The notes under the pieces were generated by a model that made no database searches, was not told the origin of the DNA, and saw only the letters and a program-made list of their open reading frames with translations. A stretch of DNA of 64,000 nucleotides, from positions 13,330,001-13,394,000 of the forward strand of contig OZ281494.1 in the NCBI GenBank assembly GCA_965637545.1, in the 5' to 3' direction. Of this stretch, positions 4,677 to 51,858 are shown in pieces. Position numbers and translations under genes: made by a program. This DNA comes from Phallusia mammillata. Its lineage: Eukaryota. How positions within the stretch are numbered: position 1 is the stretch's first letter; each line of letters begins with the position of its first letter.

Positions 4677-4759
4677 TTACTTATGCGCAATAAAACCCAG
4701 AGCTGCATTTTTCTGATACTGAAATAGGTCTTTTATTTCTTTAATGACTTCGGTGTCAT
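4677..4759 (-). pseudogene. Relic last exon of an antimicrobial-peptide-family gene
   Basis: Acceptor tgtgtcatttgtttcag then AT GAC ACC GAA GTC ATT AAA GAA ATA AAA GAC CTA (DDTEVIKEIKDLF...), homologous to DDIELIEEMEDLLY of the copies at 25-40 kb. Original stop lost; no intact upstream exons found. Confidence 0.65.
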
Positions 4760-4975
4760 CTGAAACAAATGACACACATAGTAGTTTTCTTTATAACAAA
4801 CTACTCCATTTATTTTGAGTAACTCACCCCTAAAAAATCATGGTTCAAAATGCTTTTTTTAATTTCTAAACGTTGGGTCACTGTTTGTTAGTTATTGTCA
4901 GTCATGAGGAATGATATCTACAGTGTGAACATTATGCAAACGGTAACTTTACGTAACAGTTTAAACTCTTTACGC

Positions 4976-11474: not shown

Positions 11475-15399
<3,925 letters not shown>

Positions 15400-16984
15400 A
15401 AAAGCCTGAATGTTTATTTGTGTTTTTCCTCATGATAAAACACAGGTAAAGTATTTTTTTAAACATAATTTGTCACGGTAAATTCGTTGGCATTATTTAC
15501 TTATCAAATTCGTTTTTGTCTTAATTTACTTTGTTAGTGGTGTTTTTTCCGTACATTGTATTAAAAAAAAACACTAAAAGTAGTTTATTAGGTCGGCAAC
15601 TGTTTCGTGGTGAAAATTGTTTGGAACTGGAACGCAATTTTTGGTATGTAATCAAACTTAATTTTAAAAAAAGTGTGGAGTCATTACACACCAAGTTAGC
15701 GACAGTGAGTGCACGCGCGAGACATTAGCCGCACATGCGGGTATAGCTAGGTTACGACACTCCTGTTTATAAAGACAAACATGCTGAAAAAAAGGCCTCC
15801 ACATTTGTTCAAGCCACAACTGGACACAATCCACTAGAGGCACTGGTTCCGCTGAATTTGTTCGTCCATGCTTTCTGCAAATTTGTTCGTCCATACTTTC
15901 TGCAAAGCTGATTTTTCATCAACAGCGTTTAATCTTTGCAGAGTTACATGATTAAATAGTCATATATAGTCGGAGAATCAAGTCAACGCCAATCAAAATA
16001 ACATTGGTTTACAACTTCAACTAAACTTGGTTTGTGAACCAAATGTTTTAATTTACAAGTAAGATTTTCAGCAGCAATATCATTCTGGTACCTATGAATT
16101 TTCATGGCTCTTATTGTTACATTATCATAGTAAAATACTTTTTGACATGACAATTTACTGACCGCGCTTACATTTTGCCGCATAATACAATTTGCAACGA
16201 TAAGCATACGACTTTACTGAGATGTTTATTAGTGGTACTCTCAGTGGTAAAACGAAAAACGTTTATAAATCAGTATCAGAATGTTTAATAAATCAGTATC
16301 AGATAATCGCCGTTCTTAAACACAGCTGGAAGTTAAACGAGTTTGTTAGCTCTCCTTTGGTTTCCCTTGGACAAAAACTAGAATGTTCAATATTATATTT
16401 TCCTCAAATTATTTTATCTTTTCGTTTTGAAAACACTGTCGTTCTTACAACTACAAAAAAGCATTAACATGTTGTCTGTTACTTAAAATGTGAGCCTTGC
16501 GCAGGGCCAAGCAAACCTGTAGTTTTAGATGTTATTGCCAACATACTGGATACCTCAAAATGAAAATGATTTCGATCCCAGTTAGAAAATTCTCTGGTCT
16601 TTTTGGAACCATGATATGTCACAACTCTTGGCGTATAAACTCACGTGTATTTTAGTTACCACTGTTTCATGATACGTTTATGAGTCCTTGGGTCCCCAAA
16701 ATTTCGTGCCTATAATTATTTGATCTTTCAAAATAAAAATGACTACGCGTGTCAACATTTACTACGAACTTGAAGTTTGCGCAATTGTTAGTTATCAAAA
16801 AACAGACAGGTCGGTGCGCATTAACTTGAAAAAATCAAACGTGGCTCGTAACATCTTAGGCTAAAAACGGTTGAATATTTGGACTGTTTTCATAAAAAAA
16901 CTTTTTTTTTGTAACAAAAAGTCAAAATACGTTTCTAAGGGGCTAGATATAATATTTTATTTTGCGCTTAGAAGATATTTCAGT

Positions 16985-17161
16985 TTACCTCAGTGCTCCT
17001 GATGCAGCTCCTGTAGCTGCTGCTTCCGCTGGTTTAGCGACACTGCCAACTGCCTTACCAGCTTTCTTGGCAAATTTTGATAATTTGCTCCACTTTGCAT
17101 CACTTTGGCGACAGAAAACAAGAAGGCAGATTAACACGATAGAGAGCACCTTGCTGTTCAT
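16985..17161 (-). CDS. Antimicrobial-peptide-like precursor AMP-1, truncated (no exon 3/4); 58 aa if the donor is read through
   Basis: MNSKVLSIVLICLLVFCRQSDA-KWSKLSKFAKKAGKAVGSVAKPAEAAATGAASGAL, then AG|gtaa (read-through gives R-stop). 5'UTR exon donor at 17506-17507. No exon 3/4 homologue in 15900-16980. AATAAA on the minus strand at 16956-16961. Confidence 0.7.
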   Translation of the reverse strand: MNSKVLSIVLICLLVFCRQSDAKWSKLSKFAKKAGKAVGSVAKPAEAAATGAASGALR

Positions 17162-17167
17162 CTATAC

Positions 17168-17415
17168 CAGGGGTCACCAAACTACGGCCCGCGGGCCGGA
17201 TCCGGCATTTTTTAGGTTGCCAAATTGTAATAATAACTTTGTAACATTAAAAGTTAATCTACTCCTTACAAAAGTTTTTCTGTGGGGATATTCAGAATTG
17301 ATATACCGATTTTCATAGTTGGAAAGACGGCGCTAGGGCATGTAAACTATGCGGCCCGCGTGAATCATTATTAGCACTCATCCGGCCCACAGTGAAAAAA
17401 GTTTGGTGACCCCTG
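17168..17415. mobile_element. hAT-type MITE inserted at the AMP-1 acceptor/start codon
   Basis: TIR CAGGGGTCACCAAACT / AGTTTGGTGACCCCTG. Perfect 8-bp TSD ATCTATAC (17160-17167, 17416-17423). Confidence 0.93.
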
Positions 17416-18788
17416 ATCTATACAATAATGCAACACAAAATGACTTGTTTTGATTTTTTGATTGTTAAACACAAACCTACTGTTAGGATTATTATCATGT
17501 CACTTACTTTTTGTTGCGTGGCTTCACACAAGATATCTTTGCAACTGTGACTTAACAGGACGGCAATTGAAAGGGCGGGAAAACTTTATAAGTGTTATAA
17601 AGCCAAAGCAGCTGTTTTTTCAATTACTTGCGAGGATGTTAAAATGTGTAGCAACCAAATCCAACTGTATTAACAAATTATGTTCGGACTTTGTAATATT
17701 TCCTGTGGCAGTTAATTAGGATGTCGATGCAACTTTGTGATCTAGGGTTTGCAAACTTTTACCGTATGGTTTGTTCCGTGCTGTGATTGGACACTGCTTT
17801 GGGTGGGAATTTGTGCAAGATCTCAGTCTCAGTGCAAATGCAACTGATGGTGTATCTAAACGTATATGTGTATAATAGTCTTTGGAAGGTTTGCTATCTT
17901 AACTAAAAAAAATTCGTACTTGCGGTTAGTTTCCTTATTAGTTAGATAACAAAAACTGTTCGTTGCGTCTGAGTCATTTAAACGTTTTGTTAGATCCTTC
18001 CGTCCATTGATGGAAAAACATATGGCCGAAATAACGAAACGCAAAAGCCATATGCTATCAGCCCGCCGTCCATATTTTACCACAAAAGCAGAGTTGCAGG
18101 TATATGTTAAAAATACGATAAAACCTCAAAGGTAGGTATCTTACTTTTGATTACCCCAAAAACTACTTTCGTTGCATTGTGTATTATCGCAATGAAGTTC
18201 ATTCCACGTTTGCTACAGTGTATTGGTAATTCTTTCAACATACAGCAGCCGTAGTGTAGTGGTTTACAACAAGTAACTTACTAACGAGGCTACCCTCAAC
18301 CGTATGGCGCATGTATGCTGTAAATTGTAACTTTAACAAAAAGCAGATTAGCAGTGGCAATTTTACAAAGGGATAACCTCCGAAGCAATATTTTTTTGTT
18401 ATAACAGAATAGAAGTATTTTAAACATTCGTTTCGTTGTTTTGCAAAATCAATGGAAAGCGAGTTAGTTTGTATGATAGTGTAGCGCTGATTATTTGCGC
18501 GAGTTTAAATATCGAATGACAACAAGACGGAAAGGGTAAGACAAGACACGTTGCAAAAAAGGCATGTGACGTATTGTGCGGTTCGTGCGCTAACGATAGT
18601 AAACATTCTGCCTAAAATCAGTGTGTACAGTCAGAATGGTTTGAAAAATATAAACTATACTTTACTGTAGACTAGAGAAACGTATATACTTTTATTTAAA
18701 TTGAATAAAGACTTAAATTCGAACTCGTTTAACGTACATACGGCAAAACGTGTTTTTTGTAGGTTACAAAAAGTGATACAGGCTCAAA

Positions 18789-23620
<4,832 letters not shown>

Positions 23621-24476
23621 TGATTAGTTTCTCGATGTTTTTGAACAATGAACTCAGGTAAAACCGTCTTTAATTTTATCTGTCATGGTGAGTTAGATAA
23701 AATTTGTATTTAAAATTTCTATCATATTTATATTTTTGTCGTGTATTCAGAGTGTAACAATCAAAATGCTGACTGAAATTAACTGTTTGGTTTTTAGCAA
23801 ACTTTGTTTATGTCTACAAAACAGTGCCAAAGCGAAGTTTTTTTGCCCTGTTTTTGAGTAGCAGGTTTAATTTAAACCTAAGAAAGCAATATTGTACAAG
23901 TAATTTCACGCTGCAAAATTTGGTCGTATTTTTCATAACTTTACAGCATATGCAGTCATACGTAGTAATAAACAATGTCGTAAGAACGTGTACATTGACA
24001 ATGTGTGTGTTAACTTTTCCTAAAAACTTGTGAGCTATTGACTAAACAGAATGTATCAGAATACACAATATGTATTTCAACCAAAGTTTTAGGAATGACA
24101 TGCCGCTTGGACTAATACAATCTTTATTGTTGTGTTCAGTCGTGTATATAAATGAAGGTAAAACCAGGTGGTTAAATTTGTTTAAACTACCCGTCAATTG
24201 TACACACAGATATACTGATACGTAGTCAATGCAATTTGTGTTTAATCAATAATTCGTTTGATTTTTAAGCAATAAATTTGTCCAAACTTTTTGTCAATGT
24301 AAAAGTAAATTATACGATGTAATCTTAAATCATTCCTAAAAAAAAAACGATTAGATTAGTTTTAATTGCTGCGTCTAACTTCCACATGATGTAATCGAGC
24401 GCTTTACGAAGTGTCTTTGCTGTTTACGACGCTTGCCGACGAATTTTTTTCCTTCAGTTACATGGAAAATTTAGTA

Positions 24477-24773
24477 ACACCTCACCTCACAGCGGGTCAA
24501 CATTTAGCTAATTTCTGATAAGTGGCGCAAAGAGCACTCTTTCATTTGAAACGATATATCTCTAAAAATACTCACGGTTAGGGCTATTACGGTCGGGGTA
24601 AGGTATTAGCACATAAAATTCAATAAAACTAGCAATAGAACTTATAGTAATGTAAATTTTTCAAAAACTTACATCCTAACCCTACCTATTTTCGGTCGCT
24701 AAATAAATAATTCAGCTTTTTGCGTCACCTATCGGAAATTAGCTAAATGTGGGTCTGCCGTGAGGTATGGTGT
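24477..24773. mobile_element. MITE with long imperfect TIRs and TA flanks
   Basis: ~55-bp imperfect inverted termini (CCTCACAGCGGGTCAACATTTAGCTAATTT / AAATTAGCTAAATGTGGGTCTGCCGTGAGG). Internal GGTTAGGG / CTAACCCT motifs. TA on both sides. Confidence 0.7.
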
Positions 24774-25092
24774 TAGTAGCTGTATCCAGTTACATAACAT
24801 ATTTCCCATATCCAAGATAACCTTTCCACAAAAAAAGCCTTACTGCAATTTTCGTTTTTATTGTTTATTAATGTAAGTTTTACAACTACACAAAGCGTTA
24901 ACCAAACATGATACCTTCGTGGAGTGTGCCCAACTAGGAAACAAAAGCTATTTAATACTTTTGTTCGCTTTTCATTTAAACAAGGCATAAAAAATATGGA
25001 AAGAGTTAAGTTGGTAATGTCCACGTATTTTTGCATTTATTACGAACGCTAATTCACGTAATAAAAACACCATGGACGATATTCCCGTCACG

Positions 25093-25823
25093 CTAATAAA
25101 GTAGGTCCTCCATTTCTTCAATGAGTTCGATGTCATCTGAAACAATAACACATTTGCTAGTTTCTCTTGCAAAATCTATTTTGTATCTTGAGTAACCAAC
25201 CTATGTTCAATCTTTCGTGCAGCCTAGAGTCTCCAAGAGCACTGAAAAATCGCAATATAGGCCTAATTCAAATTTAAGTCACTCGCATAGGGCTATACGT
25301 TAAGCAAAAAGGAGTTGTTTATTTTGTGGCAGTTTTTAATGGTGGTCACCACATATGTGCGCAAATGTTGGCACACACAAACATTAAGTTTAGACTCAAA
25401 CAACAACATATTGCATTGGTATCAGATATATTAATGTCACTATTTTGTGTTGTTGACATATTGCCAATGTATTTCAAAACCTAATTGTCAGACAAATAGA
25501 AACTATTAAATTGTTTCTTGAAACGTTTTTGTTGTTGTAGTTTTATATGACCCGAAGTTTAACATCAACACTGGCAAAGTTCTCAGCCAGTAGTACCTTC
25601 GAAGAAGCTAGGTTTTAAGTATCTTGCACTTAAAACTGTCTGTCAGTTTACAAAAAAAGCTACGTTATTGCTCCACTTGCCCTGATTTTACTGCCTTAGT
25701 GACGCCACCACCAGCTACCTTCATAGCTTTCTTGATTATGCTTGCAATACTGTGCCACGATGCATCGCCTTGACGACAGAAAAGCAGGCAGATTAACACG
25801 ATTGAGAACACTTTGCTGTTCAT
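25093..25823 (-). CDS. Antimicrobial-peptide-like precursor AMP-2, 75 aa (GC-AG second intron)
   Basis: Coding exons 25823-25681, 25241-25201, 25136-25093: MNSKVFSIVLICLLFCRQGDA-SWHSIASIIKKAMKVAGGGVTKAVKSGAL-G-DSRLHERLNIDDIELIEEMEDLLY*. Donor GG|gcaagt. 5'UTR exon donor 25938-25939. Confidence 0.82.
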
Positions 25824-26080
25824 CTAAAAAACAATGCAACACAATGTGACAAAATGAATTTTGTTGTTATTTTTAACGCACACATAACCGATTCTATTAA
25901 ACCTGAAACTACTGTTAGCATTATTATCATTGTACTTACTTTTCGTTATGTCGCTTCACAAAAGATATTCTTTGCAACTATAATTCCACAGAACGGCTAG
26001 TGAAATCGCGGCAATACCTTTTACGTGCAATAATGCCGAAAACAGCTTTTTTCTCTCTCGCGCCATGGGAAATGATCCCT

Positions 26081-26113
26081 TATCCTGAATTGTTCACGTT
26101 TGAAACCAGCTGG
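26081..26113. promoter_or_regulatory. Conserved upstream module of AMP genes
   Basis: TATCCTGAATTGYTCACGTTTGAAAMCAGCTGG-like block at a similar distance above exon 1 in four copies (26081-26113, 30295-30327, 34587-34618, 40520-40552). Function inferred only. Confidence 0.45.
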
Positions 26114-26524
26114 CAACTTAATTCTGAAAACAGAGAGTGAAAACAACTTTAAAATATACAGTCATTATTCTATAATAAGAAATAAAAATAAAAGATTTTT
26201 TTTATAAATTTTGTTTGACACCAAAGACAAAAATAAAACTGGTTTCGAACAAAATAATATTTGCACATTTTTTGACAAAAACATATTATTATGGGCCAAA
26301 CAAAGTTTCACAAGGTAAAGTTTAGCATTTTTTCAGTTTAATTTCCGTCGTTAAAATAGCATCTAAAGTTTGTTTAACATTTTTGGTTAAACATTGTGCC
26401 CATAACACACTACATTAAGTTGTTTGCCTGCCCGCACGTATTTCTCAAGCCATGCCTGCACAAAATAGGCGGTCAATATTTTTGACGACATTTGGATGCG
26501 ACGTTTTATGGCTTTGTCTTAAAA

Positions 26525-27051
26525 CAGTGGTTCCCAAACTATGGTACGCGTACCACTAGTGGTACGCGAAGGTCTCCAAGGTGGTACGCGAGCGGGGAGC
26601 AACTTATTCAGTTCACACCAAACGATCGCAAATGATCTTCTAGTGATTATCGTAAACATTATTTTAATTTACACAAGTTACGTAGAGCGTGAAATTTTAC
26701 CCTACTAAATTCCAATTCCTTGGTGTATTGACGCATCGAACTGTAAAGCAGGGTTTCTTTGTGACGAAATAGGTGTATTATGACGTAATGAATCTGTTAT
26801 TACCACGTAATAAATCCTTAAAGTCTGACTTTTTTTGTTTAATATTTGCGAGCCTTTTGTTACTAAAGGCTAAAGTTACTAAGGTAAAGTTAGTTAGTGA
26901 AGTTTAGTAACATTTTTATTCATTAAACATTTTGCCTATCATTTTTTTATTTGTGAATTCTGGAGTTTTCTAACAATTATTGTAGATGGTACGAGAACGC
27001 TGCATGAACCCAAAAAATGGTACGCGAGTAGATAAAGTTTGGGAACCACTG
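26525..27051. mobile_element. hAT-type MITE
   Basis: TIR CAGTGGTTCCCAAACT / AGTTTGGGAACCACTG. Perfect 8-bp TSD TCTTAAAA. Confidence 0.92.
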
Positions 27052-27479
27052 TCTTAAAAGGAACATATGCTCAGTTCTTTTCAGTGCAACTACAACTGAG
27101 GTCTTTATTTTGGTACTCGCGGTTAGTTGCCTTGTTTGCCCGATTACAAAAGTGCTTGTTGCATTTTATAAATACAATTAAACCTTGGGTAGGTATGAAG
27201 CTGTTAGTTACTTGAATGAAATTGCTTTGATTACTTTGTGCAATGTATTTTTTCGGAAAAGCATATACATAATGATACAACAGTGGCAATTTAATCATCT
27301 GTTGTTATGTAGCTTTTTAGTTTGTAGTTGTACCACGTTTGCTGCTGCTGTTCATAAAAAATGTAATACCAGAATGGTTGTAGTTTTCTTTGTTTACAAA
27401 ACAAGGGAGAGTTTGAAATATTAATGGGTCAATGCACCGTATCGCAATCGTAGTTACCCGCCAGGTTTGCCCACAATGT

Positions 27480-27830
27480 TCATATTGTCCTCTTTCGTAA
27501 AACAGTATTTCATACCCTCAGTTGGCATCAAATGCAGCTTTTGTCCAAAGGAAAGAAATCACCCTTTATCCTTTCTAGAGCACTGGTATTTAGCACTCGA
27601 GGAGAGCATTACTCATCTTTATTACGTTCAGTTGATTTTGTTTGGGAAGTTCCTCTCCCTGTCGCGATGTATGTTGGCTGGGCAGATTTTGTTAACATTT
27701 TGCTATTGCATATTGTATATGGAACTTTGATTTTCACTGCATTAAAAACTTGCCTAATGAATTCTAGAGCCTTATTATTGAAAGATTCATATTTGGCTAT
27801 ATATTAGAGTTTGGTTATCTTGACATCTGG
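27480..27830. repeat. Recurring ~350-bp block upstream of AMP genes (part of the tandem unit)
   Basis: Homologous copies at ~32110-32470, ~34980-35220, ~35370-35470 (partial), ~38030-38330, ~40905-41200 (shared CTCAGTTGGCAYCMAATGCAGC ... GAGCGCGTTACTCAT ... CATATGTTGGC). Confidence 0.8.
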
Positions 27831-29142
27831 GTTTTGGCCACAGCCTTGTACCCGCAAAAGTAGAGTATGCTGCAATGACGTCAATTAATTTTTGTCTGCT
27901 AATATAGCTTTATTGTAGGTTGTGTTGGCATTGGGTTGCATTATACAAATACCTGAGTCGTATTTGTCCTTGACAATTACTACAAAGACTTTCAGTAGAC
28001 TGAACCCAAGTTTTAGTAAAAAAACATAAAAAACACCAAATTGACGAATGTCAAGTAAGACCCAAAACGTCTCATTTAAACTAAAGTCCGAACCCGGCCC
28101 AACTTACCACTCTGTGCAGAATGTACAGTATATTTAGCATGCAAAAGTGAATAAACGTGAGAAGTTGATTTAAATGCTATAGCCTAATTGTTGCTGCATT
28201 GTTTGAGCAATTTGTTCATTACGTGGTGTTGACTCGTTCTAAATGGTTCGTATATGTGTCTGTGGCTTCATAATTCGAATTATAGACGCTTCAAGATGAA
28301 ACTGGCGCAATAATATTCGCAACAAGCAGGTCAATCAAGTCAAGTCAAAAATTTATTTGCAAAGTCACTTTATCATCACAGTTTTCACATATGGGTCAAA
28401 ATGCGATGCCTTGCTGACAGCATTTATAAAAAGCTATTTAACCTACATTTAGGGATGGAAAGGCGGTTTTACTAGCAAGTGGGGCGTTAGAAAATAATTT
28501 ATATCCTTTTTCTTGCTTCTGTTAAAAAACAACAGGTGCGAATCTGGCCCGACTGTCAAATCTGAAGTGGGGCTTAAAACGCGTGAATGATCTTGGATTG
28601 TCAAAATACCAGGCTAAAAGGTTATCACTAGTGGTAAATTTTATTGAGAAACCTCTTCCTTAACAATTTAATGTATCGCATTGGGTTTAACCATTTATTC
28701 CGATGTTACACTGCTGTTAAGTTTATTTCAAATGCATACAATTCATCACATAGATATTTTTAGGCATTTTTTAAACATTACTGGTATTGTTTTCAGCCAC
28801 CCTTTACATCTGTTTCTTTACAAGTTTCCTTCACTACAAAACTGAACTTTCATTCAAGTTTATGAAAACATTAAGTCATTCATGCTTAAAGATTTTAAGA
28901 TATACATATTTCACCTTTATGGCATTATCAGTATGTAAAACAGAGGTTTGAACCATTTTTTAGTTATCAGAAAACAGACAGGTTGGTACGCATATATTGT
29001 GGTTAGTAACGTCTTAGACTCAAGCTTATTTTGCACGCTGCCAAATTTACAACCTTCTTATTTTGGTAATGTCTACATATTTTACTTTTATTACGATTGA
29101 CAATTCACGTAATAAAACACTATGAGCAATCTTTCCTTCACA

Positions 29143-30040
29143 CTAATAAAGTAGGTCTTCCATTTCTTCAATGAGTTCGATGTCATCTGAAACAATGACA
29201 CATTTGCTAGTTTGTCTTGTAAATCTATTTTTTATTCTTGAATAACTGACCTATGGTCAATCTTTCGTGCTGCCTAGAATCACCACTGAAAAAGAGAATA
29301 AAATTCAAATTCTGTTTAACTAGTCACTCACATAGTTTAACTTGTCACTACATTAAGAAAAAAGGTCGTTTATTCTGTGCAAGTCTTTGGTCGTGGTCAA
29401 CATAGATGTGCACAAATGTTGGCAGATGTGCGGACCTTTTTTTAAGTTAAAGCTGACTGTTTTGTTTGTAAAAGTAAAAACAGCAACATTTTACATCGGT
29501 ATCAGATGTTTTTTTTTAATTTCGCTATATTGTGTTGTTGACATAATGCCAATGTAGTTTAAAACTTAACTGCCACAGAAACAAAACATCTATTAAACTG
29601 TTTCTTCAAACGTTTTTGTTGTTGGAGTTTTTTATGTCACGAAGCCTCAAACGTAAACACAAACACTGGCAAATTTATTCGACCAACTTTCTAAAACGGT
29701 AAAACGCATTTGTTATGTAGGGTATCTTCGACAGACAACAGAATATAAAAAGAATCATTCTTGCTTCGAATAAGGTGAGAATTTCGACTATTTTCTAAAA
29801 AATTTTAAAATACTAATTTTTTCTAAAACACTACATGTAACATCTTATATTGCGCTTATAATACATTTCAGTTTACCTCATTGCTCCATTAACGGCTCCT
29901 GTGGCTGCCTGTTTAGCGGTTTTACCAATTGCTTTACCCGCTTTTTTACCAAACCTTTTCAGTTTCTTCCACCCCGCATCACTTTGGCGACAGAAAACGA
30001 GAAGGCATATTAAAACGATAGAGAGCACCTTGCTGTTCAT
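29143..30040 (-). CDS. Antimicrobial-peptide-like precursor AMP-3, 80 aa, intact
   Basis: Coding exons 30040-29877, 29285-29251, 29186-29143 (243 nt, all GT-AG): MNSKVLSIVLICLLVFCRQSDA-GWKKLKRFGKKAGKAIGKTAKQAATGAVNGAMS-G-DSRQHERLTIDDIELIEEMEDLLY*. 5'UTR exon donor 30146-30147. Confidence 0.9.
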
Positions 30041-31644
30041 CTATAAATCAATGAAACACAAAATGAATAATTTTATAAAAAATCTATGCACATACAACCT
30101 TCTGTTAAACACGAAACTACTGTTAAGATTATTGTCATGTCACTTACGTTTTGTTGTGTAGCTTTACAAAATAAATCTTTTGCAACTATAATTCAACAGG
30201 ACTACAAATAAGGGTGCGGTAATGCTTTTTACGTGTTATAAAGTCGATAACAGCTTTTTTTCTCCATAATTACTCACGCTATGGGAAATGTTTTTATCCT
30301 GAAGTGCTCACGTTTGAAAACAGCTGGTACTTTATCACACTGAAGACAGAGAATAAAAACATCCTGAGAATACATGACTATAAAGTAAAAATAAAACTTT
30401 CTTTTCTACATATTGTTAAGCACCAAAAACGAAAATGTAATTGGCTTAGAACAAAATACTTTTTGCACATTTTGTGGGTGGCATCAAAATATTTTCGTTT
30501 CAACGTTTTAACGTCAAAATAACTGTATATTTGCTCTATATTTATGCGAAACCACCTGGTCTTAAGTTTCACATTTAACCTTTTATTTTAGTTTGCGTCT
30601 TTGGAAGGTACAGCCTCCAAACTCCGTTTACCATTTATGCCATAAACGTTATGTATATTACACATGGCATGCATCCTTTTTGCCCACACATTTGTTTTCC
30701 GGCGAGCGACGTTTTATTGCTTTGTCTAAAAATGAGCAAAACCACATTTAGTCTCTGTGCAACTTTACAACTAAGGTTTGTTATTTGGTACTTGCGTTTA
30801 GTTTCCTTATTTGCATTAGTTAAGATGAATATATTCATATTGGGATCAGCCCTGAAGCGTTCATGCACACTCGAGATCACTTGCCATATGGGAATGCTTG
30901 GAAAATCGACTTGATTCGGTATCACACCTTCAATAGGCCTGGCATACTATGATTTGCCTGAGTGAAATGACTAAAACGGTTTGTTGCATCTGAGTCATTT
31001 AAACGTTTAGTAGACATACCCTAAATCCTTCCGTCTCTTGTAGGAAAACATATGTGCGAAATAGACCCAAAAGTGCATATGCTACCAACCAGAAACAGCT
31101 CATTGTAAGTTTTTCCAAAAAGCAGCTGTGTTACAAAATCAGAACCTTAGAAGGTAAGTGTGTAACTGTTAGTTACCTAAATGAAATTGCTTGCATTACA
31201 TTGCACAATAGAAATGTTTCGCAAAATATGTAATGATAATGAAATGATAATGAGCATATGTAATGATTACTGACGGTAGTAGTAATTTAAATATTTGTTG
31301 CTATTTCACAATGTAGTTATACCACGTTTTCTACAAATTTTGGTATTGCTGTTCAACATACATCAGCTATCTTTACATATTTACAGATGACCAACAAGGT
31401 TTGTCTTATGATGCTGTTCTGTCTTGTCATAAGTTGTCAACAATGTGAAGGAAGTTGGAAAAAATTCATCCGTTATATTGCTCGTAATTGGTAAAGAACA
31501 TTTTCAATTTGTTTTATTTGTTCCTGTATTTGACAAAAGAAAATAAAAAGCGGTACAAAGCTCGTTCAGATTGGTATAGGGAAGACCATTTACTGGATTA
31601 TACATAAACTTTTCATTGTTCACCTTCTTCGCCTTAAATAAATC

Positions 31645-31862
31645 NNNNNNNNNNNNNNNNNNNNNNNNNNNNNNNNNNNNNNNNNNNNNNNNNNNNNNNN
31701 NNNNNNNNNNNNNNNNNNNNNNNNNNNNNNNNNNNNNNNNNNNNNNNNNNNNNNNNNNNNNNNNNNNNNNNNNNNNNNNNNNNNNNNNNNNNNNNNNNNN
31801 NNNNNNNNNNNNNNNNNNNNNNNNNNNNNNNNNNNNNNNNNNNNNNNNNNNNNNNNNNNNNN
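31645..31862. other. Assembly gap (218 N)
   Basis: Run of N characters. Confidence 1.
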
Positions 31863-33675
31863 ACAGGGATGAACGAGAGGAACTCTCAAAAATTGCACAA
31901 AATGAGAGACTGGCAGTTGATTCAGCCGACAACGCTATGTTTGTGGATGTTGTGGCATGACGTGCTGTTTAGCCCGTAATCAACTATAAAACTGTAAAAA
32001 TGTAATAACAGAAACGGTTGTAGTTTGTTTGTTTACAAAACAAAAGAAAGTTTAAAATATTTTTTGGGAAATGTACAGTGTATTATAGTTGCCCGACTAT
32101 ACTTTGCCCCTATGTTCATATTGTCTTCTTTCGTAAAAAAATGATTCTCATAACTTAAGTTGGCATCCAATGCAGCGTTTGCGTAATGGAAACCCCCTTT
32201 ATTCTATCCAGAGTACTGATATTTAACACTATGAAGAGCGCGCTACTCATTCTTTAATACGTTTAATTGATCCGATGGGGAGCTTTTTTATCTATCGCAA
32301 CATATGTTGGCAAGGCAGAAAATTTTGAATATATGCAAGCCTTTGCATGTTACGTATAAAAGTTGGATATTCAGGCAAGCGAAAGTTGCCTTATGAAGCC
32401 TTTTTAGCCAAAGATGCATATTTGGCTTTATATCTGAGTATTATGACCTTGGCATCGCGTTTGGTTTACAATCAGAATATGCAGCATTGACAACATTTTA
32501 TGTTTTGCTAACAAAGCGTAATTAGTTTTGTTGTCTTCGAGTTTAATTATATAAATCCCTGACTATTTTTTTTCAATCATTTTACGATAAACCAAATTAA
32601 TTTAACAACCACCGCTTTTGTAAACCAAAATGCTTTTTTTAGGAGACGACAAGGTAGTTTTTTATCGGTCGGTCGTCACTTGTTGAGGCTGGGAAGGGCT
32701 TTTTCACATGGTAGGAAAAAAGTTTCTGCAAGTATCTTCAACATTTTTTGTGTGTCTTCTGCCCTTGGTAATTACTGCAAATCAGTCAAAACTACTCACT
32801 GATACTATAGACTAGAGAAAGTGTAAAATTGCCTCCAAACAGGCCAGAACCCAAGATTTTTCAAAAAAAAAAGTTTTAAATAGAGATGTCATTATAGGAT
32901 CGAACGTTGTGAAATTGTGGCGCAAGTGAGGCGAATGTGACCTAAGACCCAAATAAAGTTTGTTTTATTCAAACTTAGGCCCGAACCCGGTCTGTCCGAT
33001 TTCTAACTCATGCGTTGGAAAGGAACCAACGTTTTAATGCACAAGTCTTTCTAACTCAACTGCTTGAAAAAGATCTGACGCAATGTGAAACTTTTTCCAC
33101 AATCTCATAATGCTCATGATTTGTACTGAGAGCGATAATAAGTAAATGTTACGTATTACTGTTTATACCAGCAGTCACCAAACTCCACCCTTTTTGTTCG
33201 ATCCGAAATAGTACTAGAATTGGTTTAAAAAAGTATGAAACAACTTTGTAATATATTTTGCTGAACATATAAGCCATTGACGCTTGTGAACATCTGTTGA
33301 CTTCTACATGCTTTAGACATGGTACGAACTTTTTTTAAATCACTGAAGTAAATGGACTGTCCTTTGAACGATTGCCCTTGTTAGTATAGCCTACCTTTTT
33401 CTATTTGATATTTGATCTTTCAAAAAAAAAATTTCGCGTGTCAACAATTTGCTACAAAATAGAGGTTTGCGACCATTTTTAGTTTTTAGAAAAAGACGGG
33501 TTGGTACGCATAAAAACAGTCAAATGATTCGTGGTTAGTAACTGGTTATAGGCTCAAACTGCTTTTGTACGCTGCCACCATCACAGCTTTATTGTTTTGG
33601 TAATGTCCTTATATTTGTACATTTATTACCATTAATTCACGCAATAAAAACACCATGAACGATTTTCCCTTTACA

Positions 33676-34348
33676 CTAATAAAGTAGGTCCTCCATATCT
33701 TCAATCAATTCGATGTCATCTGAAACAATAACACATTTGCTAGTTTGAAACCTATTTTTTTATTCTTGAATAAATTACCTATGGTCAATCTTTTCCTGCA
33801 GCCTAGAGTCAAGTTAGTTCAACAAGACACTTGCATAGGGCTATATTAAGGAAAAGGGGGTCGTTCATAATGTGCCAGATTTTTAATGGCGGTCATCACA
33901 TACATGCACAAATGTTGGAACCCACAATCGTTTTTATAAGTTTTTACTCACTGTTGTGTTTGTAAAAGTAATCAACAGCATATTATATCGACATGAGGTT
34001 TATTTGTGCGATTATTGTGTTGTTAACATATTACCAATGTATTTCAAAAACTAACTGTCAGAAAACGTTTTTTTTTGTTATAAACATCAACACTGGCAAA
34101 GTTCTAAGTCAGTAAATTTTACTAAGAAGCTTGGATTTTGGTGCCTTGCGTGTTAAATGTCTGTCTGTTTACGAAAAAAGTCTACGTTATTTCTCCACTT
34201 ACCCTGATTTTAGTGCATTTTTAGCAATACCACCAGCTGCCTTGTTAGCTTTCTTTAGAAAGTTTTTAAAACTGCCCCACGATGCATCGCCTTGTCGACA
34301 GAAAACAAGAAGGCAGATTAACACGATTGAGAACACCTTGCTGTTCAT
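33676..34348 (-). CDS. Antimicrobial-peptide-like precursor AMP-4 (original exon-3 acceptor deleted; predicted new acceptor)
   Basis: Exon 34348-34203: MNSKVFSIVLICLLVFCRQGDA-SWGSFKNFLKKANKAAGGIAKNALKS. Predicted 17-nt exon 33795-33779 gives G-K-R-LTI. Last exon 33719-33676: DDIELIEDMEDLLY*. 5'UTR exon donor 34462-34463. Confidence 0.75.
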
Positions 34349-36623
34349 CTATAAACAATGCAACGCAATGTGACTTAGTTTTTGCCAAGGAAATTTTGTT
34401 GTAATTTGTTCACATAACCTTTTTAAACACGAATCTACTTAGAGTTATTATCATTGTACTTACTTTTCGTAATGTGGATTCACAAAAGATATCCTTCTCA
34501 ACTAAAATTCAACAGGACGGCAAATGAAAGCGCGACAATACCTTTATGTGTAATGAAGTCTGAAACAGTTTTATTGTCAATTTCCCTATCCTGAATTGCT
34601 CACGTTTGAATTAGCTAGTGAGAATATACGTCCATAAACACTAAAAAAATATAGTTTTTTTGTCCTAGTGGTTCAAATAAGTTACCACATTTGAATGGTA
34701 ATTATAGCACTTTTTTAGTTTTTTTACACTTTTACCCTCACGCCTTTGTTTTGTAATGTATGTGCAAATTAGGCGATCGATATTTTAAATGGCGTTTTAA
34801 AGCGACTTTTCTATTGCTATATCTAAAAATGATCAAATGCACATCATTCTATGTGCAACCCAACTAATCTGGACATACTTCAGACGTACGGGCCGCTATT
34901 TAACTTTTAGTTTCTTTGTTTGACATATAGTTAGAGAAAAGTCCATATGCCGCCAGCTTGTCCCTTATTGTTCATGATTCTTATATCCTCAGTTGGCACC
35001 CAATGTATCATTTAAACGCCAATCATTCTATTCAGAGTATTGTTATTTAATACTCCGAGGAGCGCGTTACTCATCTTTGATGTGTTTAATTGATCCTGTT
35101 TGGGACGCTCTTTTATCTTTTGCGACATATGTTGGCGAAGACGCATTTTTAAGGGCGTCAATCACTTGCCTAATGAGTTCTAGCCTTGTTATATTATTTG
35201 AAAATACCTATTTAAATCAGAACCGGCGTTAACTTACATCACATGAATATCTACATCGTATATTCCGATATTTAAAGTAAAAAAAAGTTTTTACAAAACT
35301 TTCCTACAAAGTGCCTTTTTCAAAAAATAAGCGCTCGGTGTTAGGTTACATTACATATTGACCTCTTTCGTGAAAAATGATTTTCATATTTTTATTTGGC
35401 ATCCAATGCAGCTTTTGGGTAAAGGAAACGCCCTTTATCCTTTCAGAATACTAATATTTAACACTTTGCCCAAATTCTAACTTGCGCTGGAAAGGAACCA
35501 ACGTTTTAATGCATGAGTCTTTCTAACTCAAATGCTCGAAAAAGATCTAACGCATTGTGAAACTTTTTCAACACTCTGATAGTGCTCATGATTTGTAGAG
35601 AAAGCGATTAAAGGTAAATGTTATGTATTACTGTTTATACCAGTTGCCACCAAACTACAGCCCTTTTTATTCGGCCCGAAAAAGTACTAGAATTGGTTGA
35701 AAAATGTATGAATCAACTTTGTAATATATTTTACTGAGCATATAAGCAATTAACGCTTGTGAACACTTGTTGACGTCTACATACTTTGGACATGGTAAGA
35801 ACTTTATTTAAATCACGGCAGTCAATGGACCCTATGGAACATTTCCGAGTAATTGTCATCCCAGCTAAATGTATAAAGTGAATCTTGAGTTAATTATTGA
35901 AACTTATAGATTTACGCCTTGCAAAGTATTTTAGGATTTGCAATAGAAGTATTTACAATCCCGCAACAACATATAGCATTATTTATCCTAGTGTGCAGAA
36001 TTACAACCATTTGTTGCAACATAAAGTAGATTACCAAATAACAGTTGTGCGCAAACGATTGTCCTTTTTCAGTATACCTGTAACGAAATCAGAACAATTG
36101 CTTGACAGATTTGACATTTATGTATTCCACATTATTTTGCATTTTACGATTCGCGCCATCTGACTTCAAATAAGACACCTTAAAAAAACACTGAGCACAA
36201 AGACCACAGACGTTTGGCGGTCCTATTACAATCACTTCGCCGATCTCGGTTTAGAAACTACTGCGTCAGATTTTGCAAGCTAAGCTATGGGGCCCATCAC
36301 GCTACAATCCCATTTAAATCCCAGTTTGTAAAAGCAAATACAACAACATGTTGCGTAGGTATCAGATGAATTAATGCTGCTATTTTGTGTTATAATGTAT
36401 GCCAATGTAGTTGAATTCTTAAGTGAAGCAGAAATAAAAACAATTAATCGTTCTTCATATTTTAATGTTGTTATAAGTTAGTTTTTATGTCCCGAAGCCT
36501 AAAATACTAACATAAATACTGGTAAAGTTCTTAGTCAGAAATACTTTCTAAGAATCTAGATTGTCACTGTCTTGCGATTAGAACGTTTAACAATCTTAGT
36601 TTACGAAAAAGCGTATAGGCTAC

Positions 36624-36743
36624 CCTCCCCAGCTAGTCACTTTTTTAACTCCACCAGCAACTGCTCTACCAGGTCTCTTAGCAAATTTGTTTATGTTTTC
36701 ATTCCCACTATTCCGTGAAACCTTCCTCAGTCCATGCGTCGCC
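36624..36743 (-). pseudogene. AMP-5 fragment (signal peptide deleted, frameshift, no exons 3/4)
   Basis: GDAW, +1 frameshift, then LRKVSRNSGNENINKFAKRPGRAVAGGVKKVTSWGG|gtag; paralogous to AMP-7. Abuts the 3' flank of AMP-6 at ~36745. Confidence 0.75.
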
Positions 36744-36827
36744 AAACACCGTAATGTCCACGTATTTTTACTTTTATTTCCAACGCTAATTTACATAAGA
36801 AAACACCAATGACGATTCCCCTTCACA

Positions 36828-37586
36828 CTAATAAAGTTCGTTCTCCATTTCTTCAATGAGTTCGATGTCATCTGAAACAATGACACATTTGCTAGTTTGT
36901 CTTGCAAAATCTTTTTTATTCTTGAATAACTTACCTATGGTCAACCTTTCGTTCAGCCTAGAGTCTCCAACACTAAAAAGTCAAAATTGAATTGTAATTT
37001 AGTTCAACAAGTCACTCGCATGGGGCTACATAAAGGAAAAGCGGGTCGTATATTTTGTGTCTATGTTTTAATGGTGGTCACCACACATATGCGCAAATGT
37101 TGCCACTCACAATATTTCTTTTAAAGTTAAGACTCACTGTTGTGTTTGTAAAAGTAATCAACGGATTACATCGATATAAGGTGTATTAATGCCAATAGTT
37201 TGTGTTGTTGACATATTGTCACTATATTTCAAAGCTTGACTATCAGAGAAATAGAAACTATTAAATTGTTTTTTGAAACGTTTTTGTTGTTATATTGTTA
37301 TATGACCGGAAGTTTAAAATGTAAACATCAAGAGTGGCAAAGTTCTTAGGCAGTAATACCTTCAAAGAAGCTAGGTTTTAAGTGTCTTGCACTTAAAATG
37401 GCGGTCAGTTTACGAAAATAGTTTACTTTATTGTTCCACTTACACTGATTTTAGTGCATTTTTAGCAATACCACCAGCTGCCTTGTTAGCTTTCTTGAGT
37501 AAGTTTGAAAAACTGCCCCATGATGCACCTTGGCGACAGAAAACAAGAAGGTAGATTAACAAGATAGAGAGCACCTTGCAGTTCAT
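36828..37586 (-). CDS. Antimicrobial-peptide-like precursor AMP-6, 74 aa
   Basis: Coding exons 37586-37444, 36972-36935, 36871-36828: MNCKVLSILLIYLLVFCRQGA-SWGSFSNLLKKANKAAGGIAKNALKSVV-G-DSRLNERLTIDDIELIEEMENELY*. The AG acceptor immediately before ATG is mutated to AT. Confidence 0.78.
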
Positions 37587-39503
37587 ATATAAAACAATGA
37601 AACACAAGATGACTTAGTTTCTTCCAAATATTTTTTTTGTTATTTTTAATGCACACATAACCTTTTTTCAACACGAAACTACTGTTATTATCATGTTACT
37701 TACTTTTTGTTTTGTGGCTTCACAAAAGATATCCTATTTAACTGAGTTATAATTCCACAGGACGACAAATGAAAACGCGGCAATACCTTTACGACAAAAA
37801 TAAAATAGTTTGTTAAAAAAATATAGTTTGTTTTATCCTAGTGGGTCAAACAAGGTTTCACATTTAAACTGGTAATTGTAGGAATTTTTCAGTTTTTCAA
37901 GACTTTTACCCTAATCTGAACATACTTCAAACGTAAGGGCCGCTATTTAACTTTTAGTTTCCTTGTTTGCCATATAATTAGATATAAGTCCATATGCCGC
38001 CAGCTCGCCTCTCATTGTTCACGATTCTTATATCCTCAGTTGGCACCCAATGCAGCTTTAAACGCCAACTATTCTATTCAGAGTATTGATATTTAGTAAT
38101 AACAGGAGCGCGTTACTCTTTCTTGCGTTTAATTAATACTATTGGGGACGTTGGTTTATCTTTCACGACATATGGCGAAGATGCATTTTTTAGGGGCGTC
38201 AAACGCTTGCTTATGATTTCCAGCCTTCTTATATTACATGAACATACCTATTTGACTCAGTGCTGGCATTAATTCGCATCACATGAACACCTGGTTTTGA
38301 CATCGCGTTTTTGCTCACAATTAGAATACGCAGCAATGTCATCTTTTTATGTTTCTCTGCTAACGTAGCTTTATCTGTTAGTTGTTTTTTGTTTTTTCGT
38401 TTCAAATCTTTGACTACTTTATTTCATCTAAAATACGACAAACCAAACTAACTTACCAACTACCATTTTTGTCAACCAAAATGCAATTGTTGAAGTCGGC
38501 GACATGATAGTTTTTTATCGGTCGGTCGTCACTTGTTGAGGCGGGGCGGGGCCTCTTTACATTCTAGAAACAAAGAGTGTTCACAATTATCATCTTTATA
38601 TGTTACATTAACATTTTTGTGTGTCTTCCGTCCATGGTAATTACTGTAAACCCTGATTAAACAATTCACTGGTAGTATAAAGCAGATCGGAAATTGCCCC
38701 TAAACCGGCCTAACCTCAAGTTTTTTCAATCAAATGTTGATGTAATTATGGCGCAAATAAGGCAAATGTGAAAAGACCCAAAGTCAAGTCCGTCTTATTC
38801 AAACTTAGGCCCAAACCCGGTCTGTCCGATTTCTCACTCTTGCGCAGTGAGGAACCAACGTTATGACGCACATGTGAGGGTCTAACATGTAACGGCTGTT
38901 TAAACGTATGATTTCAACTTAAATTGCCGAAAGTACATTGGGTAACTTAAGCCATACTAATACACAATCGCATCGATGTCCAAGAAAACACGACGTGGTA
39001 GTTGTCGCTAAATTATTTAACGTTGTATTCACGTTTCTTTAATAAAGCCAGCATTTTTTAAAACATTACCAGTTGCCTGATTCTTATAAAGTGAGACAAC
39101 CCCAGGCCAAGTAACCCTAGTTTTAGACATTATTGCCAATATACTTGCTCCCGTTTAAATGAAAATTGTTTCCCAACATAAACAAAAACACGCTGGTCTT
39201 TTTTGTATCACAATAGAACACAACACTTGGTGTATAAACTTACTGGTATTTTCGTTTCTATTGCTTTCTAAAACGTTTTACAAAAAAACGGCTTGGTCCA
39301 AGTGTCGTGTAATTGACCTTCGCAAATGAAAATGACTTTGCGTGTCAACAATTTTGTACGAAATAGAACTTTATTTAATTGTCAGAAAACAGACCGATTT
39401 GTACACGTTTTAAAGCTCATTTTGGGATTTGTCTGTTTACTTGTACTTTTATTACGAATTCTAGTTCACGTTACAAAACACTGTTAACGCTTTTCCCTGT
39501 TCG

Positions 39504-40257
39504 TTAGTGCATTTCGTCGTCGATCTCTGCAAGGAGTTCGATGTCATCTGAAACAATGACACATTTGCTAGTTTGCCCTGCAAAATGCATTTGTTATTAT
39601 TAATTAACTTACCTATGAACAAATTTTCGTCCGATCTAGAATCACCGAACGTACTGAAAAAAATCTTTGTTTTAATAATCACATTCAAATTAAGTTTAAT
39701 CAGTCACTTGCATGGGCTATACAGAAAAAAAAAGGTCGTTTATACTGTGAAGCTTCTCCAACAGTGTTAAACACAGATATGTGCAAATGTTGGTCCTAGT
39801 CCGAATGAGCTAATTATTTGTTTGTAAAAGAAAAACAACAACATAGTGCGTATCAGTATTAATGTCACTATTTTATGTTGTTTACATAATGTCAATATAG
39901 TTAAATACTTAACTGCCACAGAAATTAAAACCTTAATTCGTTTCTTAATATTTTGTTGGTGTTACAGTTTTGTTATGTCCCTAAGCTTAAAAAGTAAACA
40001 TAAATACTGTTAAGGTTCTTCGTTAAAAATACTTTTTAAGAAGCTAGATTTCAGTTGTTTGTGCCTAAAATGTGTAAAGATTTTAGTTTTTTAGTTTACG
40101 AAAAAGCTTACCCTCCCCAGGTACCAACTTTTTTAACTCCACCAGCAACTCCTCTACCAACTCTCTTGGCAATTTTGCCTATGTTCCACTTGGCATCATT
40201 TTGGCGACAGAAAACAAGAAGGCAAATTAACACTATTGAGAACACTTTGCTGTTCAT
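39504..40257 (-). CDS. Antimicrobial-peptide-like precursor AMP-7, 76 aa, intact
   Basis: Coding exons 40257-40112, 39653-39613, 39547-39504 (231 nt): MNSKVFSIVLICLLVFCRQNDA-KWNIGKIAKRVGRGVAGGVKKVGTWGGTF-G-DSRSDENLFIDDIELLAEIDDEMH*. 5'UTR exon donor 40376-40377. Confidence 0.9.
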
Positions 40258-41739
40258 CTAAAAACAAAGTAACACATTATGATTTTTTTTCAAGAAAATT
40301 TAGTTGTTGTTTTTAATGCACAGATAACCTTGTGTTAATCACGAAGATACTGTTAGCATTATTTTTATGTTACTTACTTTTGTTATGTGGCGTCACGAAA
40401 GATATTCTTTGCAACAACAATTCAACGGGACGGCAAGTGAAAGCACGGTAATACCTTTACGTGTAATATAACCGAAAACAGCTTTTTTTCTCAGTTACTC
40501 ACGCTATGGAAGTGTTCCTTATCCTGAATTGCTCACGTTTGAAAACAGCTGGTGAGAATATACGGCCATCAGCCTAATGGGTCAAACAAGGCATCACATT
40601 AAAATGGTAATTGTAGTATTTTTTTAGTTTCAGAACTTAACTCGCGCGCCTTTGTTTTGTCATGCATGTACAAGGCGATTAATACTTTGAATGGCATTCA
40701 GAAGCGACGTTTCTATTGCTTTCTCTATGAGAAAATGTACAGTTGTTCTATGTGCAACTACAACTAATCTGAACGTATGCCAGCAGTTGAAAATTAAACT
40801 TTTTAAAGGGCTACTATCCTAACCGTCAGTGCCTTGTTTGCCTTATAGTTAGAGAAAAGTCCATATGCCGCCAGTTCGTCGCTTATTGTTCATGATACTC
40901 ATATCCTCAGTTGGCACCCAATGCAGCTTTTGAACGCCACTTATTCTATTCAGAGTATTGATACTTAGTACTTCGAGGAGCGCGTTACTCATCTTGATGT
41001 GTTTAATTTATCCTGTTTGGGACGTTGCTTTATCTTTCGCGACATATGTTGACGAAGCGGCATTTTTTATTTTGCGAGTTTTTGCACATTGCATTTAAAA
41101 CTTTGATCTTGAAGCGTCAAACACTTGCATCATTAATTTTAGCCTTCTCATTTAAGGACACCTATTTTGAAGAGCTGGCATTGAGTTGCATCACATGAAC
41201 ATTTTCTTACAGTGCCTTAAAAAATAAGTGCTTGGTATTACTTTACATTACAAATTTTAGTGTGTCTGCTGCCCTTGACAATTATTGCAACGACTGTTGG
41301 TACAGCTTACACCGCTAGTAAACAGTAGAGTTGTAAGAAGGCGTGAATTTACCTCTAAAACGCAGGCCCGAATATGAACTGACAGTTTGCACGTGCGATT
41401 TCGACTTAAATTGCAGGAAGTACGTTGGTGTAACTCAAGCCACACGAATACACAATTGCATCGACGTCCAACAAAACGTGTCAAAGTGTTAGCTATCGTA
41501 ACGTGACACGGCGCGACAATAGTGTGGGACATGAAAACGCGTGAATAATCTTGGGTTGTCAAAATACCAGTCAAAAATGTCAAAAAAAGGTTACCACTAG
41601 TTGTCAAATGTTACCAGACATCTTTGTTTAGAGTAAAAACCCCTTTACTTACAATGTGATGCACCGCATTGTGTTTAACGATTTATTTCGTGCGAGTTTA
41701 TTTCCAATGTACGTTGGCAAGATGTATTTATAGGTGTAT

Positions 41740-45335: not shown

Positions 45336-45637
45336 TTTTCGCTGTTGACCAGGCAGCACCAAAGATACGGATGAACCCATCGTAATGCGTACGTTGGTTA
45401 AGGTTTTGATTTAAACTGGAAAATGTCTACAGGAAAAAAGACGTTTTTTGCCGCGATTTGTCTCGCCTGCCACAGTTTGTACGCCGGTAGCTGGATTTTC
45501 AACAAAATTGCCGAGAAAATGCATGCACAATGTAATGTATTTCGTGCAGTTTCTGTGGTCTAAAAATGAGTTAAGGCACTTTGAATCCCTGATATAAGGT
45601 CGCTTTAGGATCGCAATATGATGCCGAATGTAAACAT

Positions 45638-45815
45638 CAGTGTTCTTAACCTTTTGGGCTGTCGGTACCGCGTAGAGTGATCAACCAGTTCTCACATACT
45701 CTTTTTATCCGGAAAGTAACTATGATATTACAGCAATGGCTCAGAACACTAACACTCCCTGGAAATAGGTATTGCACCTCTTAGGGGTTCGCACACCCTT
45801 GGTTAAGAACCCCTC
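45638..45815. mobile_element. hAT-type MITE
   Basis: CAGTGTTCTTAACC ... GGTTAAGAACCCCT termini. Confidence 0.65.

Positions 45816-47661: not shown

Positions 47662-51858
<4,197 letters not shown>

Follow-up and report, generated by a model that had tools for sequence, protein, structure and literature searches.

Whether the ascidian Phallusia mammillata carries a hidden tandem family of genes for antimicrobial peptide (AMP) precursors, and whether such genes are transcribed and spliced, is the question raised by one stretch of contig OZ281494.1 (assembly GCA_965637545.1, positions 13,330,001 to 13,394,000 of the forward strand). This 64-kb stretch, hereafter the window, has 37% G+C and a single run of N letters at 31645-31862, and an earlier note made from its letters had pointed to at least seven related minus-strand loci. 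The analysis described here favours, with a probability of roughly 0.7, a tandem array of secreted cationic helical AMP-type precursor genes with the linear cationic layout of ascidians.

Organisation of the Array

Seven related loci were found on the minus strand, five of them full, one truncated (g17) and one reduced to a wreck of exon 1 (r36). They extend from about 16780 to about 40560; the span of 16985-40257 given previously does hold family sequence, but the family reaches beyond it on both sides. A six-frame search returned six exon-1 open reading frames (ORFs) with the family signal peptide, all on the minus strand and with their ATGs at 17161, 25823, 30040, 34348, 37586, and 40257, the wreck r36 being the seventh locus. 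A heuristic scan that took in every ATG of the window, on either strand, returned besides the six only two ORFs of the "signal plus cationic" kind, both unrelated. Self-BLAST of the window with 28900-30600 as the query delimited homologous units at 25011-26274, 33456-34610, 36751-37770, and 39416-40553; further matches were an incomplete unit (16782-17619), an additional fragment (36324-36532), and a lone exon-3-like piece (4722-4828).

The plan shared by the copies, as revealed by a six-way alignment, comprises a 5' untranslated region (5'UTR) exon, an intron ending directly at the ATG, and three coding exons. The full layout is present at the ATGs 25823, 30040, 34348, 37586, and 40257, so that the description of the loci as a 5'UTR exon plus three tiny coding exons stands for five of them and fails for r36 and for g17, which keeps the 5'UTR exon and exon 1 only. 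Coding exon 1 encodes the signal and the cationic part and is followed, in the four copies whose exon 2 is intact, by an intron of 439-591 nt; exon 2 measures 35-41 nt, intron 2 63-65 nt (in the same four copies), and exon 3 44 nt including the stop, the coding introns being in phase 2 and then phase 1 in the splice models. The models of g25, g30, g37, and g40 all fall within the precursor length of 74-80 aa proposed beforehand. Coordinates and lengths are collected in Table 1.

Table 1. Loci of the peptide array and other features of the window (exons listed in the direction of transcription).
Feature	Position (strand)	Product or state	5'UTR exon	Exon 1	Exon 2	Exon 3	Remarks
g17	16989..17619 (-)	truncated	~17619-17508	17161-16989			
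g25	25093..26089 (-)	75 aa	~26089-25940	25823-25681	25241-25201	25136-25093	
g30	29143..30303 (-)	80 aa	~30303-30148	30040-29877	29285-29251	29186-29143	
g34	33676..34595 (-)	68 aa (window allele) or 75 aa (RNA allele)	at least 34595-34464 (RNA)	34348-34203	33811-33779 (remnant, window allele)	33719-33676	
r36	36324..36697 (-)	pseudogene fragment					g40-like 3' half of exon 1 (…KRPGRAVAGGVKKV…) and part of intron 1; spoiled donor; no ATG or signal
g37	36828..37785 (-)	74-aa model	~37785-37704	37586-37444	36972-36935	36871-36828	
g40	39504..40528 (-)	76 aa	~40528-40378	40257-40112	39653-39613	39547-39504	
Exon-3-like relic	4722..4828 (-)						with homologous upstream intron end; 12 kb from the array; tail …DDTEVIKEIKDLF…
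MITE-like insertion (miniature inverted-repeat transposable element)	17163-17420						in the g17 5'UTR intron, exactly at the acceptor; 21-nt terminal inverted repeats (…CAGGGGTCACCAAAC…); TATAG at both ends
Assembly gap (N run)	31645..31862						intergenic between g30 and g34; in no gene model
Carboxylesterase-family (PF00135) exons	12072-14922 (+), 42916-51228 (-)						flank the array on both sides, on opposite strands

Transcription and Splicing

Five sequencing runs were compared with the array. Three of them (X1, X2, and X5, from one study) bear the tool label "RNA?" and hold 2-13% of the sequence words of 31863-40700, while the other two (X3 and X4, from another study) hold 98% of them and behave as genomic DNA. 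Within 33660-39659, the region covered by the mapping of read contigs, X1, X2, and X5 cover exons and 3' regions only, whereas X4 covers 30 of 30 bins; the depth of the former three is zero in all nine bins of 34660-36459 and in the first coding introns of g34 and g37. A joint between 34348 and 34464, present in X1, X2, and X5 alike, corresponds to the 115-nt 5'UTR intron of g34 (34349-34463), which abuts the ATG; a 5'UTR donor at GCGTGAGT was ruled out, as the RNA puts the donor 115 nt before the g34 ATG. The RNA-like contigs also join 33811 to 34203, where g34 exon 1 ends, 39547 to 39613, across the 65-nt g40 intron (39548-39612), and 36871 to 36935, at the g37 intron position, and a contig breaks at 39653, where exon 2 of g40 was predicted to start. 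Four joints at 5'UTR-intron and second-intron positions have CT..AC at their ends in plus-strand reading, hence GT..AG in the direction of the minus-strand genes; the joint between exons 1 and 2 of g34 falls on the damaged exon 2 of the window, where it is not clean. The DNA run X4 has none of these joints. The joints at predicted borders, the zero intron depth and the lack of the joints in X4 together argue that X1, X2, and X5 are RNA and that the genes are transcribed and spliced as predicted, so that junctions drawn from the letters are borne out at borders of g34, g40, and g37 by contigs of the RNA-like runs.

Contig depths are not expression levels, and with that reading the spliced mRNA contig of g40 has a depth of 161.6 in X1, the highest among the contigs mapped, and spliced contigs carrying the g25-type 3-bp signal deletion have depths of 40.8 in X2 and 8.2 in X5. 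Another abundant spliced contig (record 7 of X2, depth 103) matches g34 at about 90% in the signal (34277-34348) and exon 3 (33673-33720) only, with some 25 fewer bases between the two than in g34; it derives from a paralogue outside the copies in 33660-39659, possibly lying elsewhere in the genome or in the assembly gap. Low-depth contigs extend 1 kb past the g40 stop, where a GTAAGT at about 38456 is spliced to an AG at about 37786 and into the first exon of g37 at about 37785. This is read-through into a chimeric g40-g37 transcript between neighbouring copies (37785-39504, minus strand).

The state of the individual copies differs. The window allele of g34 lacks about 30 bp with the exon-2 acceptor and the first exon-2 bases and has one base added at 33791; its frame would be kept only by a new AG inside the exon, giving a predicted precursor of 68 aa with Gly-Lys-Arg. 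By comparison, contig 20 of X5, which agrees with g34 in exon 1, exon 3, and the 5'UTR exon with zero mismatches, carries a normal 38-nt exon 2 that starts TGTTGG and is without the extra base at 33791, and translates to 75 aa with an …SGVG-DSR… junction; the same form occurs in X1. An intact g34 allele in other animals is deduced from these contigs, and the lesion is taken as real in the assembled animal because the DNA run X4 shows no deletion at 33791. In g37, TATAT stands before the ATG in place of TATAG, with loss of the AG, and the sole contig across the 5'UTR intron (depth 5) runs to a cryptic acceptor at 37528 within the signal-coding part, skipping the start codon. Its signal also bears a 3-bp deletion, a Cys-to-Tyr change is present as well, and g37 is probably a transcribed pseudogene. 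Homology of g17 jumps from about 80 nt into intron 1 straight to the 3' flank, for which reason its exons 2 and 3 are regarded as deleted; neither was matched by any search made, and the unspliced frame stops two codons past the exon end (...GALR, stop), with an AATAAA at 16961. The first donor of g25 is of the GC type (GCAAGT), and its signal carries the 3-bp deletion mentioned above. Overall, three copies (g25, g30, and g40) look intact, some animals have an intact g34, and g37, g17, and r36 are dead or doubtful. A speculative reading of low probability would make the array a population-variable repertoire in which null and intact alleles segregate, as at g34, and are maintained by balancing selection.

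Predicted Precursors

The signal peptide, MNSKV(L/F)SIVLICLLVFCRQ(S/G/N)DA, has a single basic residue and a hydrophobic core 12 residues long, and both -3 and -1 are occupied by small residues, Ala in the case of -1. The peptide segment that follows measures 27-34 residues in the five spliced copies, lacks Cys, and has a second residue that is invariably Trp; the net charge of the segment is +5 in g25 and g37, +6 in g34, +7 in g40, and +9 in g30, the most cationic. The helical moment (Eisenberg) of the best 18-residue window lies between 0.54 and 0.76, a value reached by 0 to 1.2% of 2000 shuffles, and AlphaFold2 on the six-sequence exon-1 alignment returned one continuous helix at a mean predicted local distance difference test score of only 68. 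The tail of 24 residues, with a net charge of -7 to -9, begins with Asp after Gly in g25, g30, g37, g40, and the RNA allele of g34, and renders the propeptide nearly neutral overall; dibasic sites are absent from the intact genes. The mature charges of +5 to +9, the tail charges of -7 to -9, and the Gly-DSR junction given in the earlier note were all recomputed from the spliced models and agreed.

These traits follow the description of precursors of ascidian linear cationic antimicrobial peptides (LCAMPs), namely 50-100 residues with a signal peptide (here 68-80 aa, the signal being judged by residue pattern), a Cys-free cationic amphipathic helix after the signal, and an anionic C-terminal proregion with an acidic boundary residue (PMC7387483). 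Ascidian LCAMP precursors are probably cut before an acidic residue, as in styelins and clavanins (PMC7387483), and a cut at this place fits the Gly-Asp junction of the Phallusia precursors.

A Probable Relative in Ciona

Database queries were exon-1 translations, not spliced full-length precursors. The g30 exon-1 product had no candidates among 5.8 billion proteins in a word-index search, the six peptide strings had no occurrences in 8.4 million papers and preprints, and a sequence search of the PDB with the g34 peptide gave no match. The peptides are consequently in no protein database or paper searched, which upholds the earlier suggestion that they may be undescribed; what qualifies it is a relative already described in Ciona, of which a synthetic peptide is active. 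This relative, KH.S908.1 or KY21.Chr2.890, is an LCAMP of Ciona intestinalis that Ohtsuka & Inagaki 2020 (PMC7387483) identified in silico and confirmed by means of a synthetic peptide. Their Table 1 lists for it an acidic helix and a cationic one that includes FLNFLKKAAK; it was later counted among the "known Ciona AMP genes" (PMC10888236). Its peptide was reported with minimum inhibitory concentrations of <3.1 µM against E. coli and S. aureus and 6.25 µM against P. aeruginosa and yeast, it was active at 500 mM NaCl, and its mRNA went up in haemocytes after lipopolysaccharide (LPS) (PMC7387483). With the letters of that table, it was retrieved as UniProt H2XPU9, of 74 aa.

The alignment of H2XPU9 with g34 exon 1 is gapless, starts at Met1, and runs past the cleavage site into the peptide (BLASTP 35% identity, E 2e-7, as a single comparison); against the family profile, hhalign gives a probability of 79%. 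When the Ciona signal, peptide, and tail were each shuffled within themselves and the global score was recorded over 3000 shuffles, z was 5.45 for g34 (none of the 3000 reaching the real score), 4.3 for g37, 3.5-3.6 for g25 and g30, and 2.1 for g40; for the signal alone it was 2.5-4.4 in all five copies. Common descent of the Phallusia family and KH.S908.1 is, on these alignments, the likely explanation, and the array would then probably be the expanded counterpart of that single Ciona gene. It would be the first probable homologue of KH.S908.1 outside Ciona, which suggests that the family is as old as the common ancestor of both genera.

Divergence among the Copies

Nucleotide identity, as pairwise means over the five full copies, is 0.87 in the signal, 0.88 in intron 2, 0.84 in exon 3, 0.79 in both exon 2 and the 250 nt upstream, 0.76 in intron 1, and as low as 0.65 in the peptide part. 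By the Nei-Gojobori method, the rate of nonsynonymous change (dN) in the signal is about 0.04 in intact copies and its ratio to synonymous change (dN/dS) 0.00-0.34, with one pair undefined, from which purifying selection on the signal is concluded. In the peptide part, dN is 0.3-0.9 and mostly above the intron distance of about 0.29 (derived from the identity of 0.76), and dN/dS is 0.24-1.5, as estimated from some 17 synonymous sites per pair that are partly saturated. The peptide part is clearly accelerated, which fits diversifying selection and is not proof of it.

The same divergence could be read as relaxed constraint in a decaying, functionless array whose transcripts are the noise of duplicated promoters. 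Three to four of the seven loci are indeed damaged (g17, r36, g37, and the reference g34), and the dN/dS of the peptide part is mostly near or below 1. Nonetheless, g25, g30, g40, and the g34 RNA allele keep their frames, splice sites, charge, amphipathicity, Trp, and junction, the signal evolves under the purifying selection stated above, the g40 mRNA is abundant in one run, and pure decay would not let the peptide part outrun the introns. Wholesale loss of function is therefore regarded as very improbable, and the array of AMP-type precursor genes is a compact case of birth and death, in which the signal and propiece are conserved, the peptide part outpaces the introns in change, and live copies stand next to dead ones and a null allele.

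Proposed Function and Competing Readings

If the products are AMPs, the acidic tail would keep the peptide harmless in storage after signal cleavage, and a cut before Asp, as reported for styelins and clavanins, would release it, the Gly possibly being turned into a C-terminal amide. The released helix would lie on anionic microbial membranes and disrupt them, and duplication with diversifying change of the helix would furnish a varied repertoire of peptides while some copies decay, as g17, r36, g37, and the reference g34 allele appear to do. Of the alpha-helical AMP reading put forward in the earlier note, the spliced, transcribed, and secreted plan of a cationic amphipathic peptide with an acidic tail, in the published layout (PMC7387483), was retained, and the kinship with styelins was given up.

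Several points weigh against this reading. Antimicrobial activity, Gly amidation, and haemocyte expression are inferred for the array. The RNA kind of X1, X2, and X5 was guessed by the tool, and they may come from embryos or larvae. A hidden Markov model of the six exon-1 products matched eight of 1.84 billion representatives, only spurious repeat proteins; all eight were rejected, since the similarity of each is scattered over several short segments, seven of them are of great length, and the two examined match a repeat of the "…ERQxDxSW…" type or of low complexity. Motifs of the NF-kB type (GGGRNNYYCC) are not enriched, with 4 sites vs 2.4 expected and none close to a start. The likeness to the Ciona protein rests on the signal peptide and a Lys/Ala-rich helix, both of them composition-biased; the acidic tails score against the H2XPU9 tail within the range of shuffles (z 0.1-0.8), and the g40 peptide has no similarity to the KH.S908.1 peptide. 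The few, partly saturated synonymous sites behind the dN/dS values belong here as well.

The possible origin of the RNA from embryos or larvae is equally a point in favour of secreted signalling or developmental peptides (hormone- or neuropeptide-like, or acting in metamorphosis), of which the helix binds a receptor or matrix and only looks like an AMP. Several LCAMP candidates of Ciona were first named as metamorphosis genes, Ci-META4 and Ci-META6 among them (PMC7387483), and the window allele of g34 would create Gly-Lys-Arg, a typical hormone-processing site. Such a role is nevertheless judged unlikely, since ligands are usually conserved and their propieces variable, whereas here the presumed active part evolves fastest, beyond the introns; copies are freely lost, the intact genes have no dibasic sites, and the nearest relative, KH.S908.1, is microbicidal and LPS-induced.

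A further possibility shares with the AMP reading the physical chemistry of lytic peptides and differs in the target, the products being membrane-lytic against animal cells, either as haemocyte cytotoxic effectors in allorecognition or inflammation or as tunic toxins against predators or fouling, with antibacterial action as a by-product. Peptides of ascidian morula cells, such as botryllin, do join cytotoxic reactions (PMC9966394). The Gly/Ala-rich, weakly hydrophobic helices of the array are closer, however, to selective AMPs of the dermaseptin type than to strongly hydrophobic cytolysins, and a primarily lytic role of this sort is held to be rather improbable.

Under the favoured reading of AMP-type precursors, the tunicate candidates for linear AMPs, still a small set, would gain no fewer than four peptides that are intact, expressed, and hitherto unannotated. 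Their source is a marine, salt-adapted animal, and the peptide of the Ciona relative acts at 500 mM NaCl.

Other Features of the Window

More than 1.3 kb separate the N run between g30 and g34 from any family sequence. Homology of g30 ends at about 30476-30600 and that of g34 begins at 33456, none of the modelled exons and introns spans the run, and no family homology was found in the sequence on either side of it. A further copy could be hidden in it; none is needed, since the spacing from g25 to g30 (4217 bp) is similar to that from g30 to g34 (4308 bp, estimated gap included). Two listed ORFs, 31504-31932 (minus strand) and 31616-31960 (plus strand), were discarded as artefacts, both running through N letters.

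The exon-3-like relic outside the array has a less acidic tail than the array copies, its frame continues for 13 more codons, and no exon 1 to match it was found nearby. A G+C-rich stretch at about 4900-5000 may be of the same kind as the MITE-like insertion in g17. Between g37 and g40, a G+C-rich stretch of about 45 nt (38513-38557, …GGTCGGTCGTCACTTGTTGAGGCGGGGCGGGG…) is highly repeated in the genome, its depth in the DNA run being about 9100, against about 290 in the adjacent sequence. To either side of it, many contigs end loosely, and it also occurs in RNA contigs. Rfam gave no match in the whole window, this repeat included. The PF00135 exons around the array may serve as synteny anchors for a comparison with Ciona. 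The most G+C-rich part of the window contains a single-exon ORF of 379 aa (56371-57510, plus strand) with a coiled-coil-like N-terminus. It is without a Pfam domain, returned nothing from the ESM Atlas, and, in agreement with the stated species, is 99% identical over 100% of its length to the UniRef entry "Uncharacterized protein LOC108950802" of Phallusia mammillata.

Comparison with Known Peptide Families

The styelins and botryllin, haemocyte AMPs of Styela clava and Botryllus schlosseri, resemble the array in being ascidian, in their signal peptide, cationic helix, and acidic C-terminal extension, and in a cleavage before Asp to which the Gly-Asp junction of Phallusia is comparable (PMC7387483, PMC9966394). 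A conserved KHK motif, heavy modification, and a Phe-rich peptide of 32 residues characterise the styelins (PMC9966394), whereas KHK occurs in no array peptide and each has 0-2 Phe; by the published description the array is set apart from them, and the styelin relationship raised earlier was abandoned for want of the motif and of a Phe-rich 32-aa peptide. The botryllin precursor, at 158 aa, is also far longer than the 74-80 aa of the array (PMC9966394). The Ci-MAM, Ci-PAP, and "MNKSALL…" families of Ciona are like the array in that their precursors have the same three parts and each family conserves its signal (PMC7387483). They differ in their signal consensus and in their Arg/Trp-rich or Arg/Val-rich peptides, with no detectable sequence relation; that of Ci-MAM, MDRKIVFALxLV… (PMC7387483), is distinct from the MNSKV(L/F)SIVLICLLVFCRQ.DA of the array.

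Outside the tunicates, frog dermaseptins, dermadistinctin K in particular, and fish pleurocidins share two traits with the array, a Trp close to the N-terminus and an amphipathic helix, rich in Lys, Ala, and Gly, that is about 30 residues long. The precursors of dermaseptins have an acidic piece before the peptide, ending in Lys-Arg, and their family pattern of a conserved signal and a hypervariable peptide is the same in the Phallusia array. In the array, the peptide directly follows the signal and the acidic piece is C-terminal, so that the likeness is confined to the helix. It was measured for the g30 peptide and dermadistinctin K (2jx6) at a phmmer E of 0.013, and convergence is its likeliest cause given that the precursor plan differs. 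Descent would replace convergence if the array and KH.S908.1 represented, on the tunicate side, an old chordate lineage of linear Trp/Gly-Lys-Ala AMPs from which pleurocidin/piscidin- and dermaseptin-type peptides had also come, a proposal to which very little credence is given.

No new principle is called for, the architecture and pattern being already known from Ciona, frogs, and mussels. Last, the closest counterpart is KH.S908.1 itself, which at 74 aa, against 74-80 aa, has a 22-residue signal, a coinciding cleavage site, a Cys-free Lys/Gly/Ala-rich amphipathic peptide of +6, a Gly-Asp junction, and an acidic tail of -8, and which has an NFLKKA core in common with g34 and g37. It differs in the lack of Trp2 and in a tail alignable in composition only, and activity and LPS induction are known for the Ciona gene only, the Phallusia array being known from genes and RNA contigs. 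KH.S908.1 is the sole carrier of such a peptide in the Ciona candidate table, with no other protein found on search, in contrast to the array of seven loci in Phallusia.

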